Below are positions 5,352 through 25,507 of a stretch of 54,807 nucleotides of DNA, piece after piece. Source of the stretch: Calcarisporiella thermophila CBS 279.70. Its lineage: Eukaryota > Fungi > Calcarisporiellomycota. A program made the position numbers and the translations under genes. The stretch covers positions 8,193 to 62,999 of the forward strand of contig NW_027192197.1 of NCBI RefSeq assembly GCF_041956535.1, written 5' to 3'. The notes beneath the pieces are model-generated. The model saw only the letters and a list, made by a program, of their open reading frames with translations, did no database searches and had not been told where the DNA came from. The number at the start of each line of letters is the position of its first letter. Within the stretch, counting starts at the first letter, position 1.

Positions 5352-7631
5352 TTATTGCCCTTCTTGCTGTATCTGTTGCTGGTGCGGCTCCCGCTGTTGT
5401 TGCGCCTGCTGTGAGTGCACATGGTGCTGGTGTGCAACAGAGTTCGGGTCGACGACCCACGGCCGTGCTTTCGGATCGCTGGCGTAGTAAGTGCAGGCAA
5501 AGCGGTATACTCCAAGCGGCATATTGAGATCCTCGCGTTTCGCTCGCTCAACTCGTGCCTTGTCCTTCAGCTGTATATTGGTGCGCCTGGCCAAACGTCC
5601 GGTGCCATTGGGGCCATGGATTTTCAGAATGTCAACCCAATGCGGGCCTTGGACTCGATCGAGTCCATCCTCAAGGGCATGAATCTCATCGGCCGTCCAG
5701 AACTCGGCAGCCTTACGCTTCTTGCGCTGCTCCCGCTTGCGCCGTATGGGACTCGGTCCTCCCAGCGGGACAGAGGCGCCAGGAGACCCCACCGCAAGCA
5801 GTCCACCGTCGGGTGCCGGTGGCTGGGTGTTTCCCGTTGCCGAGTCGATGTCGCCCACCGCGACAGCATTCGAGTGCACATCTACAGAGCTTTCCTCGCG
5901 TGGCCGCGCAGAGCCCCTCGAGGTCCCCTCCCCGCCGTCCTCATCAAAGAACTCTGTTCCATTTCCGATGTCTCGGTCCGACCGGCGTCTTCGCCCAATG
6001 CTCTTGCGCCGTCGACGGTGTATGATTGGCGAAGGCGATTGCTGGTGTGGTGAGACTTGAGCTGTCTGTGGCTGTTGTTGCTGATCATTTGTCATCGCAT
6101 GGAGTTGGATCAGATGGGAGAGGGGGATCGGGTCAAGGGTAGCGATTTGTTGCGCGAGTTCTGAGTGGCCCAGTTGCTTGAACTGGTGAATGAACTGCGC
6201 CGCTTGCTCGGCGGTGAGTGCATTGACTCTGGAAAATAGCGGAGAAGCACAGGGGAAGGAGAGAAGAGGAAAAATGCATTAGTTGTGTGTAGAATGCGGA
6301 GGAGAGTGCGTGGCTGCGCCATCGCAGAGTACACTTACTCCTGCTGAACATTGCCATTGAGCGATGAAATGGAGAGTTGGGGCGGCTCCTTGCTCTCCAA
6401 TACCCTTGCCAAGGAGGGGCCCATTAGCCAGGGTTCTCCATGAATGAGGACGGCGCGCAAACTCTCTTGCATCTGAGCATCCCATGGATATGCGTTTCGA
6501 ACTCTAGATATCGTCAAACCTAGTATTTCCTTCTTCCTCTCATGGCACATTTCCAATAATCGTTTTGCATGCTCATTCAAATAGATAGAAGAGTGTTCAT
6601 CGCGCCCAAGTAAGGTGCGCACCGAGTCGGGGAAAAACCCCACACAATCCTCCTCGGTTATATCCTCAGACGAGTCGGTGCTATGCATGCAGGTTGCCGC
6701 CTAGAGGTGAAAAAAAAAGGGAAGGAATTCAACGCAAACCCTCCTCAAAAACACTCAGTTTTCTTGCCCAACGTTTACCCAAGTTTTAAGGTGCAAAACC
6801 ACGTTGTCCCATATATCCAAGTCCCATACCGCCTCAGGCGCCAGTCTAACAAGCATGTTCGCCGCCCATGCCAGTTGCTTTGCACTAATGTGGTTTGGAT
6901 CATCAAGTAGGCTGCCCCACACCATGGCAAGATTGGTGCGGAGCATTGGGACACGCGCTTCCGCCTCAAGCTCCCCATCAAAATTCCCTTCTGCAATTAG
7001 GATTTCAATAGGGTAATGATTCATTTTAAAATCTATGAAAAGAAATTGTGTCATTGCGATTCAACATGGCAAGTATACACCATCAGATCGGATCGGATAG
7101 GTATAGCTTACTTTCAAAATCCTTCCACGCTTTCATCCTTCTAAGCTTAACCAGCTCCCATGCCATGCGCTCCTCCTCTCCTTCCGTCCCTTGTCCCGAG
7201 TGATTCATTCTCCGGGTCTCTTGTATTAGTGTTGATAACGCCATATGCGCGTGATAATCGAGAAGCCGTAGATTGGCTCGCCTCGTCTCCATGGGCTCAC
7301 TCCGATCGTACGCGAACCAATCATTGGTTTCGCCCCCACTCCCCCCACCATCAGGGCCGCGCTCCTCTGTCCTGGAATCTGTATCCACGACCAAGAGCAG
7401 ATCTTGCTGTGGATTGCCCGATGCCGATGGTGGCGACTGCTGTATCATTCCGCTAAGCCCCGGTTGGTTATGCAGTGTGGTGGTGGCTGGTGCGGTGGGA
7501 TCTTCGGAGGTGGTCAAGGTGTGCTGACGAGGAGAAGTTTGAGACTCAGGAGGCTGTGAGGAAGAGGGTGACATATTAGACTTAGAAAATGAGTCGATGC
7601 GGGGTTGACGAGACTTTGGCATCTCGAGCAT
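5352..7631 (-). CDS. TBF1: Tbf1/TRF-like telomeric repeat-binding factor with C-terminal telobox Myb domain (4 exons: 7631-7112, 7032-6779, 6700-6339, 6228-5352)
   Basis: WTADEIHALEDGLDRVQGPHWVDILKIHGPNG..RTNIQLKDKAR matches the fungal Tbf1 Myb domain; four ORF pieces join in frame across GT..AG introns. Confidence 0.8.
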
Positions 7632-7883: not shown

Positions 7884-7931
7884 CTAGGTTAGGTTTTTCT
7901 CCAACATTCCAAGCCAAAGCGTATGACGTCA
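7884..7931. promoter_or_regulatory. Divergent promoter with telobox-like CTAGGTTAGGTTT (7884-7896) and perfect CRE palindrome TGACGTCA (7924-7931)
   Basis: Motifs seen directly between divergent start codons at 7631 and 8008; function inferred. Confidence 0.4.
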
Positions 7932-12279: not shown

Positions 12280-14482
12280 CTAAAGCGGAGCCAAGAAGGT
12301 CGGTTGAATTCTCCGCCGCTTCCCACTGGCCGCCACTCCCTCTTTTCCCGAGATTTGCTTGCACGCTCGGCCAACATCTCCGTGATTCATGCGAGGCTCG
12401 CCTCCACTCACCGGCGTCGAGGGAAACCCTCCCTGGCCTTGTGCCTGCAGCCGCTGCGGCGCTTGTGCTTGTGTCTGGGGCGGGCCATAAGGTTCGCCCA
12501 GCTCCCCCGAGTCAAATGACACAACCGAGCAGAAGCCGTCCGTGGAGCAGAGGAGCAGAATTCTTCCATCCCGCGACCTAGCATGGTTTTGAGTTAATGG
12601 TGATAATCGATTCCTAAATTAGCCGCCGCACGTTTTGTATTTCCCTCCTCGCGCTTAACATCTCGGCAGTGAGCCGTCGACTTACCATGCAACGTCGGTG
12701 ATGGTTGCGTAATGCAGGTTCCCGATCATGGCCAGCGCCCCCTGCTGCTGCGTGTCGTAGACAAAGACCGCGTCCTGCGTGGCGACGGCATAGACCATCC
12801 GGTAGGGGAGCTCGCACCATGCGCCGCACTCCTCGCGAAGCTTGAAGCGCACGGGATTGCAGCGCACCGCGATCGAAGGGCGCCGGTGTCCTGGGAGGTG
12901 GGCAATCGGCTGTCTGTTGAGGGGCCAGCCACAGGGTGCATCCATTAGTCCAAGGTATGGGGAGGCCACACACATGAAACCGCTTACCGATGGAGGCCGG
13001 ATCGCGGGTAAATATACACCGTGTTTCTTAGGTCCTCCTCTCCACGGAGATCGCTCGGCTCCCTGTAATGCCCTGCCGGCGTCAGAAGAAACGCCCCGTC
13101 GGGCGTGAAGGCCAGCCGTCTGAAGAAGGACATGAGGTTTTCGTCGTAGTAGATTCGCTGGGTGCTCTTGTGCGGGCGCGGCTTCGGCGCGGAAGAAGGC
13201 AGGGTGTCAGCTGCTGGCGGCGGGGTCTGCTCCGTTCCGGAGGACTCTGTGCCAATCACGGGAGGCAAAGGGGTGTCGTTGGCGGGAGGCTGCACCTTGG
13301 CTTCGGCGGGCTTGGCCTCGTTGCTCGAGGGGGGTCGCATTTGCTCCAACTTCGTGCTCTTGCTCACGCTTCGAAAGGAAAGCGAGCCATTCGGGCTCGT
13401 GGTATACTCGTAGATTCCGACCGACCTATCAACGGAGGAAGAGGGTTAACCTAAGAGCGCCGACAAATGCACAGCTAGAATGGGAAGGATGCCTGTCGCT
13501 GCTCTGGGTGGCCACATATTTCCCCAGGGGATCCCAGGCGACTCCCTGGATATAGTGATGATGATCGGCAATCACGTGGATGCACTTGGCTGCTCGTGAT
13601 GAAAGGGAAAAGAGACATGGATGAGGCTCCTTTGATGCGGGGTGGGATAGACAGGCTTCGTGAATTCGCTTTACCTTGCTTCACGTCCCATATACGTGCT
13701 GTATTATCGATCGACCCACTAATTATATAGTCGCCACAGGGCGACCATGCAAGATCGTATATATCTGCTAGCGAGCCCCTATACACCCCGGGGGGGTTAA
13801 TGAGGATCCAGCTCCAAGGAGAATCCAAGCACTTTACCTGAGAATACTAACTATTTTCCATGTCTCATGCTCGATGTCAGCGTCGCCCGACTCGAGCAGC
13901 GAGTTTTTCGAGCTTGCGTCGGCCTGTGTCCACAATATAATACTTCCATCTTGAAAAAAAATAAAACACCGCATCCATGCCCAAATAGCTTAATATTTCG
14001 GAAGAAACCCTAAAACACCCAGACTCAATACTGACCATCACCTGCGGACGCTAAAATTTCGCCTAAAGAATGTAGATGCTGATTTGAGCTTTACCACCCC
14101 CACTACCACCCTTCAACACCTATTAGTACCTTCGGGTGAAAATCTCACCACGTTCACCGCGGCCGCATGCCGATTCAGGGTGGACCTATATTCTATGCGA
14201 ATGTCCGCATCGTTCTCCTCGCCCGTCCTGACGATACGCCATATCCGCACCGTATTGTCTCCTCCCGCTGTTGCTAAGCGGTCTCGTCCGCCCTGCGGAT
14301 CGAGATCGACGGAGAAAATGGGCTGCATTTCATGCCAATGGATCTGAAGAGGCTAGCCAATGGAAGATGACGCGTCAATTTCATTCGATGGGGACAGATT
14401 TCAGCGCGAAAAGCCTCTAGGCCTTATAGGCCGTACGATCACTGCATTCATCGGGAAAATGATGGATTACCTTTACTTTCAT
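12280..14482 (-). CDS. CAC2: Chromatin assembly factor 1 subunit B (p60), WD40 protein, multi-exon
   Basis: MKVK|[38 protein letters not shown]; [20 protein letters not shown]; [11 protein letters not shown]; [12 protein letters not shown]; C-terminal B-domain-like [10 protein letters not shown]. Confidence 0.92.
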
Positions 14483-14769
14483 GGCAGAAATCTTCTTGTA
14501 TCGGTACGATTTGCCGCGTAGGGACTTTTTTTTTTGTAAATTTATGTCAAAAGGGCAACTGTTCGCGTTATTTTACTGCGCCACATTTCATTTCAGTTCA
14601 TTTCATACAGTTATGTTCATATAAGATCACACAGGGTGTCTCGTAAGGGGAGGCGTGAAACGCCCGATTTATTTTCCACAACATCCACATTCTAAGATTG
14701 ATAGAGACAGCAAGATCCAATCGGTGAGGATGCGTTTGAAATTAACTGAAAAGACAAGAGCGAAAGGCA

Positions 14770-15480
14770 GTGGTTGCGCAAGAGAGGGGGGGGGGAGGTT
14801 TTGGAGGTGGGTAGCCCCTGTGGATCAAACCTAACCTCGTGAGGGTTAGGTCGGAGCGGGTAAGAACTATTTGCCGGCGTCTTATGATGCTCTGCAAAAC
14901 CCCTCTTCCAATATTCCCTCGCTTTAGCTCCACCCGCTCAAAGGCCGCCGGTTATCCGCTGAAACCGCATTCCGCGCCAAAGCGTTTCCAAGCCAAGAGG
15001 GCTCATCATTGGCATCCGTCCCTTGGCCGACGGCCATTTTCTCGGGCCCGGGGTCCGTTTTATTTTGTGGATGGGGGGGCATTACGCCACTCTCCGCATT
15101 TTTAGGCTTTGCCATGGTGGGATGGACTCCAGCCATAGCACAAGGAATTTTAACCTAGCCGCCCGGTAAAAATGGGTTAAAAAGTCGAGCCCCGAGATTT
15201 TCTTCGCCCGCCCGACGCCGTTTGTCCCTGGCGAGATCCTTAATCCACAGCAAGGTTTGTGCACGAGTCCAAGGGGTTACATTCGAGAGGGCGAGCCGGA
15301 AGGGCAAAACGCGGCCCAAACTCCGGTCGCCGCCGTGTCCCCTCCATTCGCGGACGAGTGTTGTACGGAGATTCGTTCATGTTTGTTCGGGATGAGCGGG
15401 CCGGTCGAAGGGCAAGCACCCGTGCCTTCCATTTGGGCACAGGCTTGTACCATCGCCGACCACGGCCCATTTCTGTATCC
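14770..15480 (+). ncRNA. Candidate large structured ncRNA (telomerase-RNA-like)
   Basis: No credible ORF; many long helices whose G-U pairs favour the + strand; long-range closing helices 14811-14825 with 15243-15280; AACCTAACCT just inside; Sm-like ATTTCTG after the last hairpin. Confidence 0.5.
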
Positions 15481-15635
15481 AACCATTTTATAAGGTCCAG
15501 CGACCACGGAGAGAGGAAATAAAAAAAAAAAGGAACAAAAGTCTACAATGAGATGATGAAGGCCGAGAACGCAAAGCAAGACAAACTAAAAAAGAGCATG
15601 TACAGATAAAGTTTTGTTGAGGGGGGGCCCGTTCT

Positions 15636-16367
15636 CTACACGAATCGGAAGCAGTCGCTGCTGACGTAGTAGTTTCCAGGCTTCTCGGGGATGGGCGAGA
15701 GTATAAAGGTTTGCGAAAAGAGTCGCGGTCTCTGCTCATCGCCGTATTTGACGCTTCCGTTCACGATCACCACAATGCTACTTGTGCCCTGTGCATTGAT
15801 TGAGGCTGGAGCCATGAGGAGCAAGATGGCCGTCAGTTAGGGGAGGAGGGAGAGGGGAATGGAGAGGGTGAGGAAAATGAAGAAATGGGTCCCTTACATA
15901 TGATTGGGTGACAATCAAAGGTGTTCACCTCGTGGGATGTGCTAGGAAGCTTAACCAGAAAATCAGAGAAGGGCGTCACGCCCGAATATGCATTACCTAA
16001 GAGTGAAAAGAAAAAGAAGGGGGAGGATGTTCAATTCCAAAGAGCAAGAGGATCGAAAAAAAAAAAACTCCCACTATACCATTCCAGAGAATCGCAGAGT
16101 CATCGCGATAGAATTTATTTACTAGCTAATTGAGAAAATGAAATAAGTGGAAGGGCTCCAAGGGGATGAGGATGGGGGATGGCTTACTCCGCGTTGATTA
16201 TCATAGAGTCGGTAATAAAGTTCCACGAATTGCTCAGCCCCTTTGGCCGACACATCGACAAAGGATTTCACCTGCTAAAGAGGAATTCAGTCACGATGCC
16301 GGGGAGAGGCGGGAGGGGGAGGTCTGAGCACAGGCTCAGCAGGAGATCCACTTACCTCCACAGACAT
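15636..16367 (-). CDS. NXT1: NTF2-related export protein Nxt1/p15 (5 exons)
   Basis: SAKGAEQFVELYYRLYD..FYRDDSAILWNGN..LPSTSHEVNTFDCHP..VNGSVKYG..FSQTFIL..YYVSSDCFRFV*. Confidence 0.85.
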
Positions 16368-17465
16368 GTCTGCCCAACGATGACAAGGATCGATGGAGCA
16401 GCCCGAGCCGGATTCACGTAATGGAAAATATTGTGACTGGCTTGAGGCTTGGGTGCGAGCCGGGTCTCCAAACGACGATGGGTGGCAAAACAAGAGCACA
16501 AGTTTGTTAGTAGATTTTAGGCTGAGATGCAAAGGCGGCCAAAAATAGCCCCCCATTACATCTTGCTCTGCCCTCCGGAGGGCAGCGTATGGTTCCACCC
16601 GGCTAACCTACCTCGCCTGTGTCTCCTCTGACTCCAACCTCCCCCCACTACTATCCGGCGAAGGTTGCAACGACCACGGCCTCTGGATTCGCGGCTGCGC
16701 GCATGCGGCTCCGCCCAGCATACCACACGGCCGTTACCCGCAGCCGAAGCAAGGTGCATGCGGCTGCAACGCCAGATTTCACTCGACATTTCTCCAGGGC
16801 GGGCCAGGGCCACACAATGCACTGGCCTCCAAGTTTGCTAACCCGCCCGATTTTAAATTACAGCGAACTCAAACCCAAAGTTTGATGGGGAGGAGGGGGG
16901 AGGCGGTGCAAGGGCCGCAGACCGAGCAGGGATGGCAGCCGTCCTTCTCTCGGCCGCAGAGCCCAGCCAAACTCCCCGCCGACAGCCGGCAGGAGCACTC
17001 GGCCGGGCAGCCCGTGGCCGCGGCCGTCCGGCCTTCATCTCTGGTGGCGATCCCTCGGCCGCTTTCTATCAAACCCTTTTCGCCCAATCCCGTCGCGGCT
17101 CCCCCTTAGACTAGACTTTTCCTCCTGAGCGAAGAAATAAAGTTTTTCAGAAGCACCAACGCTCCAGGTTTTTTAAGCTCCCTCATCATCCCTCCCTGCT
17201 CGCTCTTTCTCTCTCCCCCTTTCGTTACCATTTGGATGGCTGATTGATTAGCGGCATTAGGAGGTGAGCAAATTAACCCCCCAGCCGAATCCCCACCCCC
17301 GACGGAGAAGTGCGTCCCCCCCCCCCCCTTCCATCCTCATCGTTGGAGTCTTTTTTTTTCTCAGCGGCTGCTCTCCCCCTCTGTTCTAACCCCTCTTCCT
17401 GCCATTGCCCCCCCTCCCCTCTGCTTGAACAGACTACCCAGCTGTTACTACGAAACCACATCGCT

Positions 17466-24212: not shown

Positions 24213-24829
24213 TTTATGGAATATTCATAAAGCAATAATGGGGGCGAAGCATGCAAGTAGCAAAAGAGTCTAGAGACGTGAATGTGGGATAGTGAAAAAA
24301 AAAAGGAAGAGCACAGCCAAACTGGGTCTCGTTCGCCAACATTTTATTCGGAATCAAGGGAAAACGGCCAAAAACAACGGTCGAAAGGAATTGCCATTGG
24401 CTGATCACGATCACTGAGTGGCTAGAGCGTTTCATTATCACACATATATAACCTATGCAATCCATAATTTTCCTGCACCGCCGGGCTATTGGGGGATTTG
24501 CGCGGCAGGAGAAACCTAACCTAGCCAAGCCATATTAAATTCTTGAGTTGAAATAAAGCTTCAGAACCCATTTCGAATGCCCATTTTTGGCACTGCGCGT
24601 GGAAATAAACATTCTCGATGCAAAAGAAGGCGGGAATAAAATTGGGCGTTTGCGATTTCATCATCTGATCTCGGAGTATAATTTTTGTTGAGTGGGCCCT
24701 AAGCCTAGTGTGAGGGTAGAGACTATATAAAGCACGGGTCAATTCTTCTGTTTTTCCCCTACACAAAAGAAACCCGGTTTTTCCACCTTCTCTTCTTATT
24801 ACCAACACCGCAAAAGCCCTCCCATCAGC

Positions 24830-25507
24830 ATGGAACTCCACAACCGCCGCAAGGTCATGCTCTGCTATGACAACTCTCCCCAAGCCAAGAAACTTGTTCC
24901 TTGGGCCATCGAGAACGTCCTCATGAGCGGCAAGGACCACTGTGTGATTGTCAGTGTCATCACCGATGACTACAGCGGTAAACCATGCTCCCATTCTGCC
25001 TAGAGCGTCTTAGTCCCTTACCCTTCTGCTTGCGTATATGTTATAGCCTGGCTCTCCGAAGGCAATATTGAAAATGCTAATGACGCCGACTACCTGCGTA
25101 CTTGCGTCAGCGAAATCCGGAACCGCGGCGAAGAGGTTTTAAACCGCATTGCAAAGGAAATTCGCGACAAGAAAGATGTATGTAGTTCTACTCTGGTAGT
25201 CCTTCTGTCCAACTCTCTGGTGGACTTATTTCGCTTTATTTGCTAGGTAACAACCCAGGTTGTCATCCTCCATGGCGACCCCCGCGAGGAAATAATGAAC
25301 TACGCCAAGGACGCGCATGTTAACCTGATGGTAGTGAGCTCTCGCGGTCTCGGCTACTTCGAGAGGTAAGTTTGCCTTTTCACTCTCTGTCAAGCTCGGT
25401 TCACCCAACTAATAGGATGGCATGGATTTAGGAAACTTTTGGGCAGCGTCTCGGAGTATGCTATTCGCCATGCCTCTTGCTCTGTTGTGGTGGCAAAACT
25501 GCACTAA
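24830..25507 (+). CDS. Universal stress protein (UspA domain), 4 exons
   Basis: RKVMLCYDNS..WAIENV..GDPREEI..LMVVSSRGLG..LLGSVSEYAIRHASCSVVVAK. Confidence 0.9.

Follow-up and report, generated by a model that had tools for sequence, protein, structure and literature searches.

Does the GC-rich DNA between CAC2 and NXT1 in the thermophilic fungus Calcarisporiella thermophila CBS 279.70 encode a telomerase RNA, or does the telomere-like motif at its edge belong to a neighbouring promoter? The question was raised by an original prediction, made from the letters of a 54,807-nt stretch of contig NW_027192197.1 (hereafter the window, with position 1 as its first letter), which read about 700 nt at 14770-15480 as a candidate telomerase RNA or other large RNA. 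Searches of the literature returned no characterised telomerase RNA for Mucoromycota, Zoopagomycota or early-diverging fungi, and the sole claim found concerns an unverified, ciliate-like telomerase RNA candidate in Lichtheimia (PMC4133162). If true, a Mucoromycota telomerase RNA would link the telomerase RNAs of animals with those of Dikarya and would show the origin of TTAGG in a fungus; with none characterised in Mucoromycota, there are no models against which the candidate can be matched. The most likely reading of the locus, to which we give about an even chance, is that a telobox element in the promoter of CAC2 lies next to a GC-rich spacer with no assigned role. The evidence for this reading, and for the RNA genes that compete with it, is set out below.

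The interval between CAC2 and NXT1

The interval is bounded by two genes on the minus strand, CAC2 and NXT1, which were searched one exon at a time. Its principal features are the following.

14128-14352, minus strand: exon 2 of CAC2 (CAF-1 p60), matching residues 7-78 of Chromatin assembly factor 1 subunit B (E 5.9e-15)
14472-14483, minus strand: putative exon 1 of CAC2, ATG AAA GTA AAG (ATGAAAGTAAAG; MKVK), followed by a GTAATC donor
14782-14812, minus strand: G-run, C/T-rich when read in the direction of CAC2, separating the telomere-like box from the CAC2 5' region
14852-15480, no strand assigned: GC-rich spacer (GC 0.57), single-copy and non-coding, from the CAC2 promoter to the NXT1 3' end
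15636-15803, minus strand: final NXT1 exon, including the stop codon (15636), matching NTF2/NXT1 homologues; the gene converges on the candidate stretch

Since the alignment of CAC2 exon 2 starts at residue 7 of human CHAF1B, only about four residues would be missing upstream, and the mini-exon that encodes MKVK would supply them. Taken together, these two elements place the probable CAC2 start codon at 14483 on the minus strand. The search with the last NXT1 exon returned homologues of 57-62% identity in Piptocephalis, Jimgerdemannia and Entomophthora, and the NXT1 loci of these three fungi were neither syntenic with the present one nor in possession of a convincing template. A bZIP neighbour in the window matched only itself, and protein and DNA scans of metagenomes gave no matches.

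The candidate stretch occurs once in the genome. Its GC content is 0.54-0.60, whereas the promoter and introns nearby have 0.40-0.46, and the value for the spacer at 14852-15480 is exon-like and the same as that of the U1 and U2 genes, although the spacer is non-coding. Pfam searches with the open frames of the stretch produced zero matches, a protein-level search of the same genome with these frames found zero paralogues, and the frames lack the periodicity of GC over codon positions that real exons of the window show. The original prediction had likewise described this DNA as non-coding and GC-rich.

Several smaller features were observed in the same region. An A-rich tract occupies 15517-15545, downstream of the candidate. 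A weak C/D snoRNA look-alike lies at 14882-14963 on the plus strand, with a C-box-like AUGAUGC and a CUGA about 75 nt off; its flanks are without a proper terminal stem and it had zero Rfam matches. A plant-type telobox-like word, AAACCCTAAAA, is found at 14006-14016 (plus strand), about 110 nt below CAC2 exon 2, and may be there by chance.

Telomere repeats, teloboxes and the palindrome upstream of CAC2

Pentameric TTAGG repeats of the arthropod type are unusual among fungi. In this genome, short and highly regular (TTAGG)17-21 arrays stand in the correct orientation at six contig ends (the 3' ends of C4 and C67 and the 5' ends of C10, C13, C38 and C87). Single or double TTAGGG variants occur only at the base of two telomere arrays, and arrays of four TTAGGG number zero anywhere in the genome. 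A TERT gene is present on contig C15, at about 207,000-211,650.

Copies of the corresponding C-strand motif are also abundant away from the telomeres. The genome contains 336 copies of the 10-mer AACCTAACCT, compared with 160 for the control, and an estimated 230 or so of the 336 are interstitial; the 12-mer AACCTAACCTAA occurs 188 times against 22, roughly half of these being telomeric and about 100, again by estimate, interstitial. The hexamer-type AACCCTAACCCT shows no enrichment over the whole genome (5 versus 10 for the control). The window itself holds 3 telobox sites where 0.47 are expected. The exact class VAACCTAACCTB is depleted, with 35 sites versus 77 for the control. The sites that bear most directly on the function of the motif are listed here.

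14828-14837, plus strand: proposed template AACCTAACCT (5'-AACCUAACCU-3' as RNA), two TTAGG complements that match the telomere repeat
14844-14851, minus strand: inverted box, ACCTAACC on the minus strand, in the sense of CAC2 and about 365 nt upstream of its ATG
7887-7895, minus strand: box in sense orientation, 255 nt upstream of the ATG (7631) of a putative Tbf1-like gene (5352-7631)
24513-24521, plus strand: box in sense orientation, preceding an ATG at 24831 by 318 nt; TATAAAG at about 24724
C15:212137-212148, minus strand: TERT box TCAAACCTAACCTG, in sense orientation and located about 490 nt before the TERT start codon
C10:154666-154862, C10:185671-185867 and C16:551888-552083: U2 snRNA genes, whose promoters carry the box downstream of the PSE and upstream of the TATA box

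In all three U2 genes the sense strand carries TAACCTAACCTA at about -64 together with TATAAA at -37, and the telobox is absent from the promoters of U1, U4, U5, U6 and U3. The CCTAA box was considered as the PSE of snRNA genes and rejected, as it is confined to the U2 genes and the general PSE is TCCCAYAWY. Near position 152,505 of C10, about 55 nt of an inverted copy of the U2a promoter run into an N stretch of at least 850 bases, which probably conceals another U2 copy. Sites outside the U2 genes that combine a box with a TATA element are followed by no Rfam family and resemble mRNA promoters. The TERT box has flanks nearly identical to those of the candidate and sits in an AT-rich, 1-kb intergenic region. 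The original prediction had itself mentioned, as a point against a template, that the motif occurs in promoters, and the boxes upstream of the U2 genes, TERT and other genes bear this out. Because the CCTAA motif recurs in promoters, finding a telomere-template motif in this genome says little for the presence of a telomerase RNA.

With the CAC2 ATG at 14483, the minus-strand box next to CAC2 (14851-14844) takes up the same geometry relative to the start codon as the other promoter boxes. In this genome teloboxes are enriched outside the telomeres and lie upstream of genes, in sense orientation and at promoter distance. We suggest that the palindrome AACCTAACCT-N6-GGTTAGGT, together with the adjacent G/C-run, is a telobox-type upstream promoter element that would serve the divergently placed CAC2 and would presumably be bound by a Myb-type, Tbf1/Teb1-like factor. 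The G-run, which the original prediction had regarded as a leader and which includes G10 at 14786-14795, may then act as a promoter tract at 14782-14812. The 630 nt to the right (14852-15480) would be spacer reaching to the NXT1 3' end, with helices of the kind expected by chance from its composition. The promoter boxes share the pentameric CCTAA form with the telomere repeat, and the two seem to have changed together to this form. Motif enrichment and box position at other promoters are direct observations, as is the lack of a folding signal described in the next section.

Several features of the locus fit less well with a CAC2 promoter element followed by spacer. The inverted box pair is unique in the genome within a spacing of 20 nt and so is not a standard promoter layout, and both half-sites of 14828-14851 deviate from the usual TAACCTAACCTA flanks. 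A plain spacer would be expected to have a GC content near 0.40-0.46 rather than 0.57, and this reading leaves the exon-like GC of the non-coding stretch unexplained. In addition, the site has the strongest flank helix among the 35 VAACCTAACCTB sites, and the plus strand of the candidate folds better than the minus strand by about 21 kcal/mol, a mild preference that the original prediction had anticipated from its G-U pairs. The last two points concern RNA structure and lead to the alternatives in which the stretch is transcribed.

The candidate stretch as a source of RNA

The original prediction held that the stretch pairs extensively, and this claim did not survive comparison with shuffled sequence. 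A 721-nt fold gave z -1.85 on the plus strand and +0.73 on the minus strand (20 shuffles), whereas U1, U2, U3 and U5 from the same genome gave z -2.3 to -6.1. For 14852-15480 the values were -0.78 and +0.76 on the plus and minus strands (dinucleotide shuffles), for 14657-15480 the plus strand gave +0.17, and none of the 150-nt windows on either strand fell below -1.9. The predicted helices of the candidate are no better than those of shuffled sequence. Rfam models produced zero matches in the region, both at the gathering threshold and, over 13500-16500, at E values up to 10, so that no other known RNA family claims the stretch, a possibility that the original prediction had asked to be checked; the telomerase model RF00024 had zero matches over the whole genome.

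Promoters were compared with a model of the snRNA type built from 14 snRNA and U3 genes. In these genes a PSE (WWTCCCAYAWY) is followed by TATAAA 37-40 or 48-55 nt later and, about 37 nt further on, by the RNA start, and an A-rich element (AAAARAAAAAGAG-like) stands 10-25 nt beyond the 3' ends of the snRNA and U3 genes. When left out one at a time, the real promoters scored 11.8-25.7 bits, with U6 as the exception at 8.7. A PSE-like element at 14580 with TATAAG at 14620 was rejected as a promoter of this type for the candidate, since the pair reaches 7.0 bits, a score exceeded by more than 25 random sites of the window. Screening the genome for TCCCAYA-N27-46-TATAAA returned 65 sites versus 106 for the control, and 58 unassigned sites, checked for a rival telomerase RNA, included only weak, AT-rich cases (L119 and L141).

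Among the alternatives to the promoter element, the one that survives best places another non-coding RNA of no known family on the plus strand within about 14890-15510, with the box as its promoter element and outside the RNA. At the other loci inspected, the C-strand form of the box is the sense form and lies upstream of a gene, and the plus-strand copy here points rightwards into a GC-rich, non-coding stretch. The A-rich tract at 15517-15545 resembles the element that follows the 3' ends of snRNA and U3 genes. Against this, the TATA box that the U2 genes place 16-17 nt past the motif is absent, and the stretch offers neither a PSE and TATA composite nor a folding signal nor an Rfam family. 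On balance such an RNA gene is unlikely, but it is a better candidate than the two readings that follow.

The telomerase RNA gene itself would yield a plus-strand RNA of about 650-850 nt with its template at 14828-14837. In addition to the template, it would comprise the following elements.

14811-14825, plus strand: 5' strand of the claimed core-enclosing or template-boundary helix, ending 2 nt upstream of the motif
15243-15280, plus strand: 3' side of the proposed long-range helix, pairing with 14811-14825 and closing about 420 nt downstream
15097-15182, plus strand: possible U/A-rich H-type pseudoknot of 8+10 bp, with U5/U4 and A5/A4 tracts
15289-15468, plus strand: three predicted 3' hairpins (z -1.91; on a rerun, -1.78 on the plus and -1.28 on the minus strand)
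15469-15480, plus strand: AUUUCUG (weak Sm-like site) overlapping GUAUCC (poor splice donor), both off consensus

In this scheme the boundary helix would close on 15243-15280 around a pseudoknot at 15097-15182, and a 3' domain of three hairpins would lead to the weak Sm-like site. All the sequence features described in the original prediction were found where it had placed them, among them the helix strands GTAGCCCCT (14811-14819) with AGGGGTTAC (15272-15280) and CTGTGGAT (14818-14825) with ATCCACAG (15243-15250), the inner pairs GAGCGGGT (14854) with ACCCGCTC (14932) and CTCGGG (15041) with CCCGAG (15191), and the hairpin TTTTAACCTA/TGGGTTAAAA at 15148-15182. The predicted fold recovered the hairpins at 15289-15331 and 15398-15468, and AACCTAACCT at 14828-14837 does contain the two TTAGG complements.

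Several points favour a telomerase RNA. The telomeres consist of (TTAGG)n at six contig ends with no TTAGGG arrays, TERT is present, and 14828-14837 is complementary to two copies of the genome's own telomere repeat, where a template calls for at least 1.5; the site could therefore template the true repeat, and the interpretation passes the main test that the original prediction had set for its refutation. Another template site, at about 1,072,174 of contig C7, was discarded, as it offers only the 7-nt TAACCTA. The locus is single-copy and non-coding and has the GC content of U1 and U2, and the plus strand is mildly favoured. However, the motif is common, with some 230 interstitial 10-mers by estimate, and is used in promoters. 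The original prediction had noted that the inverted copy GGTTAGGT at 14844-14851 can pair with the putative template, and the two would form a perfect 8-bp hairpin that locks the template.

The helix adjacent to the motif is seen in both the MFE and the centroid folds of 14805-15285, and it comes first among the 35 sites of the VAACCTAACCTB class. The site is also the GC-richest of that class without a long open frame, and because the best flank helix and the highest GC coincide, the two measures are not independent. Among 41 random, unselected genomic AACCTAACCT sites the flank helix ranks 3rd, its energy being tied to GC content; measured against these genomic controls, the helix does not reach significance. 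The original prediction could fix neither a canonical pseudoknot nor a P6.1. An H-type pseudoknot can now be proposed, in which CAUUUUUA (15097-15104) would pair with UAAAAAUG (15167-15174) and UUUUAACCUA (15148-15157) with UGGGUUAAAA (15173-15182), with the U and A tracts noted above; the window has pseudoknots of at least 17 bp at a density of about 0.16 per kb per strand, which corresponds to a p of roughly 0.05-0.1. The failure to find P6.1 stands, as the plus strand of 14600-15600 holds no 4-bp stem with a NUNGN loop of this type. Vertebrates and ascomycetes share P6.1 and budding yeasts are without it, so its absence does not exclude a telomerase RNA.

At the proposed 3' end, the prediction of an Sm-like ATTTCTG overlapping a donor-like GTATCC at 15469-15480 proved right as to presence and overlap, but both motifs are weak and off consensus. 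The donors of the NXT1 introns read gtaagt, gtaagc, gtatag and gtaagg. A CAG about 20 nt past the donor-like site is too close for an intron, and no usable intron follows the donor. With folding at the level of shuffled sequence, unlike the snRNAs of this genome, no promoter of the snRNA type and no telomerase match in Rfam, we consider a telomerase RNA gene at this locus improbable. Equally improbable is its fuller form, in which a compact, roughly 700-nt RNA, the first telomerase RNA of early-diverging fungi (Mucoromycota), would template TTAGG without a P6.1 and keep its template in a hairpin until TERT binds.

Finally, an extended 3' UTR or read-through of NXT1 on the minus strand, or a decayed former coding exon, is likewise improbable: NXT1 points into the stretch from its stop codon at 15636 and the codon score of one minus-strand open frame, 14927-15136, is weakly positive, but the stretch has no Pfam match, no protein-level paralogue and GC that is flat over codon positions, and for a genome of 28 Mb a 3' UTR of 700 nt would be long.

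Comparison with known systems

The core of telomerase RNA in fungi and vertebrates combines a template, a boundary helix, a core-enclosing helix, a triple-helix pseudoknot and a three-way junction with P6 and P6.1 (PMC3592445). The candidate resembles this core in its two-repeat template-like motif, in the predicted helix 2 nt upstream, in the possible U/A-rich pseudoknot within the loop and in the three predicted hairpins that come after. It differs from it in having no NUNGN P6.1, a self-paired template, folding at shuffle level and weak Sm and donor motifs. Compared with the snRNA and U3 genes of the same genome, the candidate is similar in GC content and in its A-rich tract downstream, and dissimilar in that its best PSE and TATA composite attains only 7.0 bits.

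The likeness to promoter teloboxes is closer. In Saccharomyces cerevisiae, Tbf1 marks the promoters of snoRNA genes, and plant promoters contain telo-boxes. Teb1 of Schizosaccharomyces pombe and Tay1 of Yarrowia lipolytica bind promoter sites of the TTAGGG type (PMC12449055). As with the Tbf1 and Teb1 teloboxes, a telomere-like box is enriched outside the telomeres and lies on the sense strand in Calcarisporiella, where it precedes snRNA and housekeeping genes, TERT among them, by some 50-500 nt. Unlike those teloboxes, it is the pentameric CCTAA that is enriched here and not the hexameric form, and the inverted pair upstream of CAC2 is unique. The more solid result of this analysis is that the telomeres and the promoter teloboxes of this fungus, including the U2 and TERT boxes, are both pentameric, CCTAA/TTAGG. 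This shared form points to a putative co-evolution of the telomere repeat with a promoter-binding factor.
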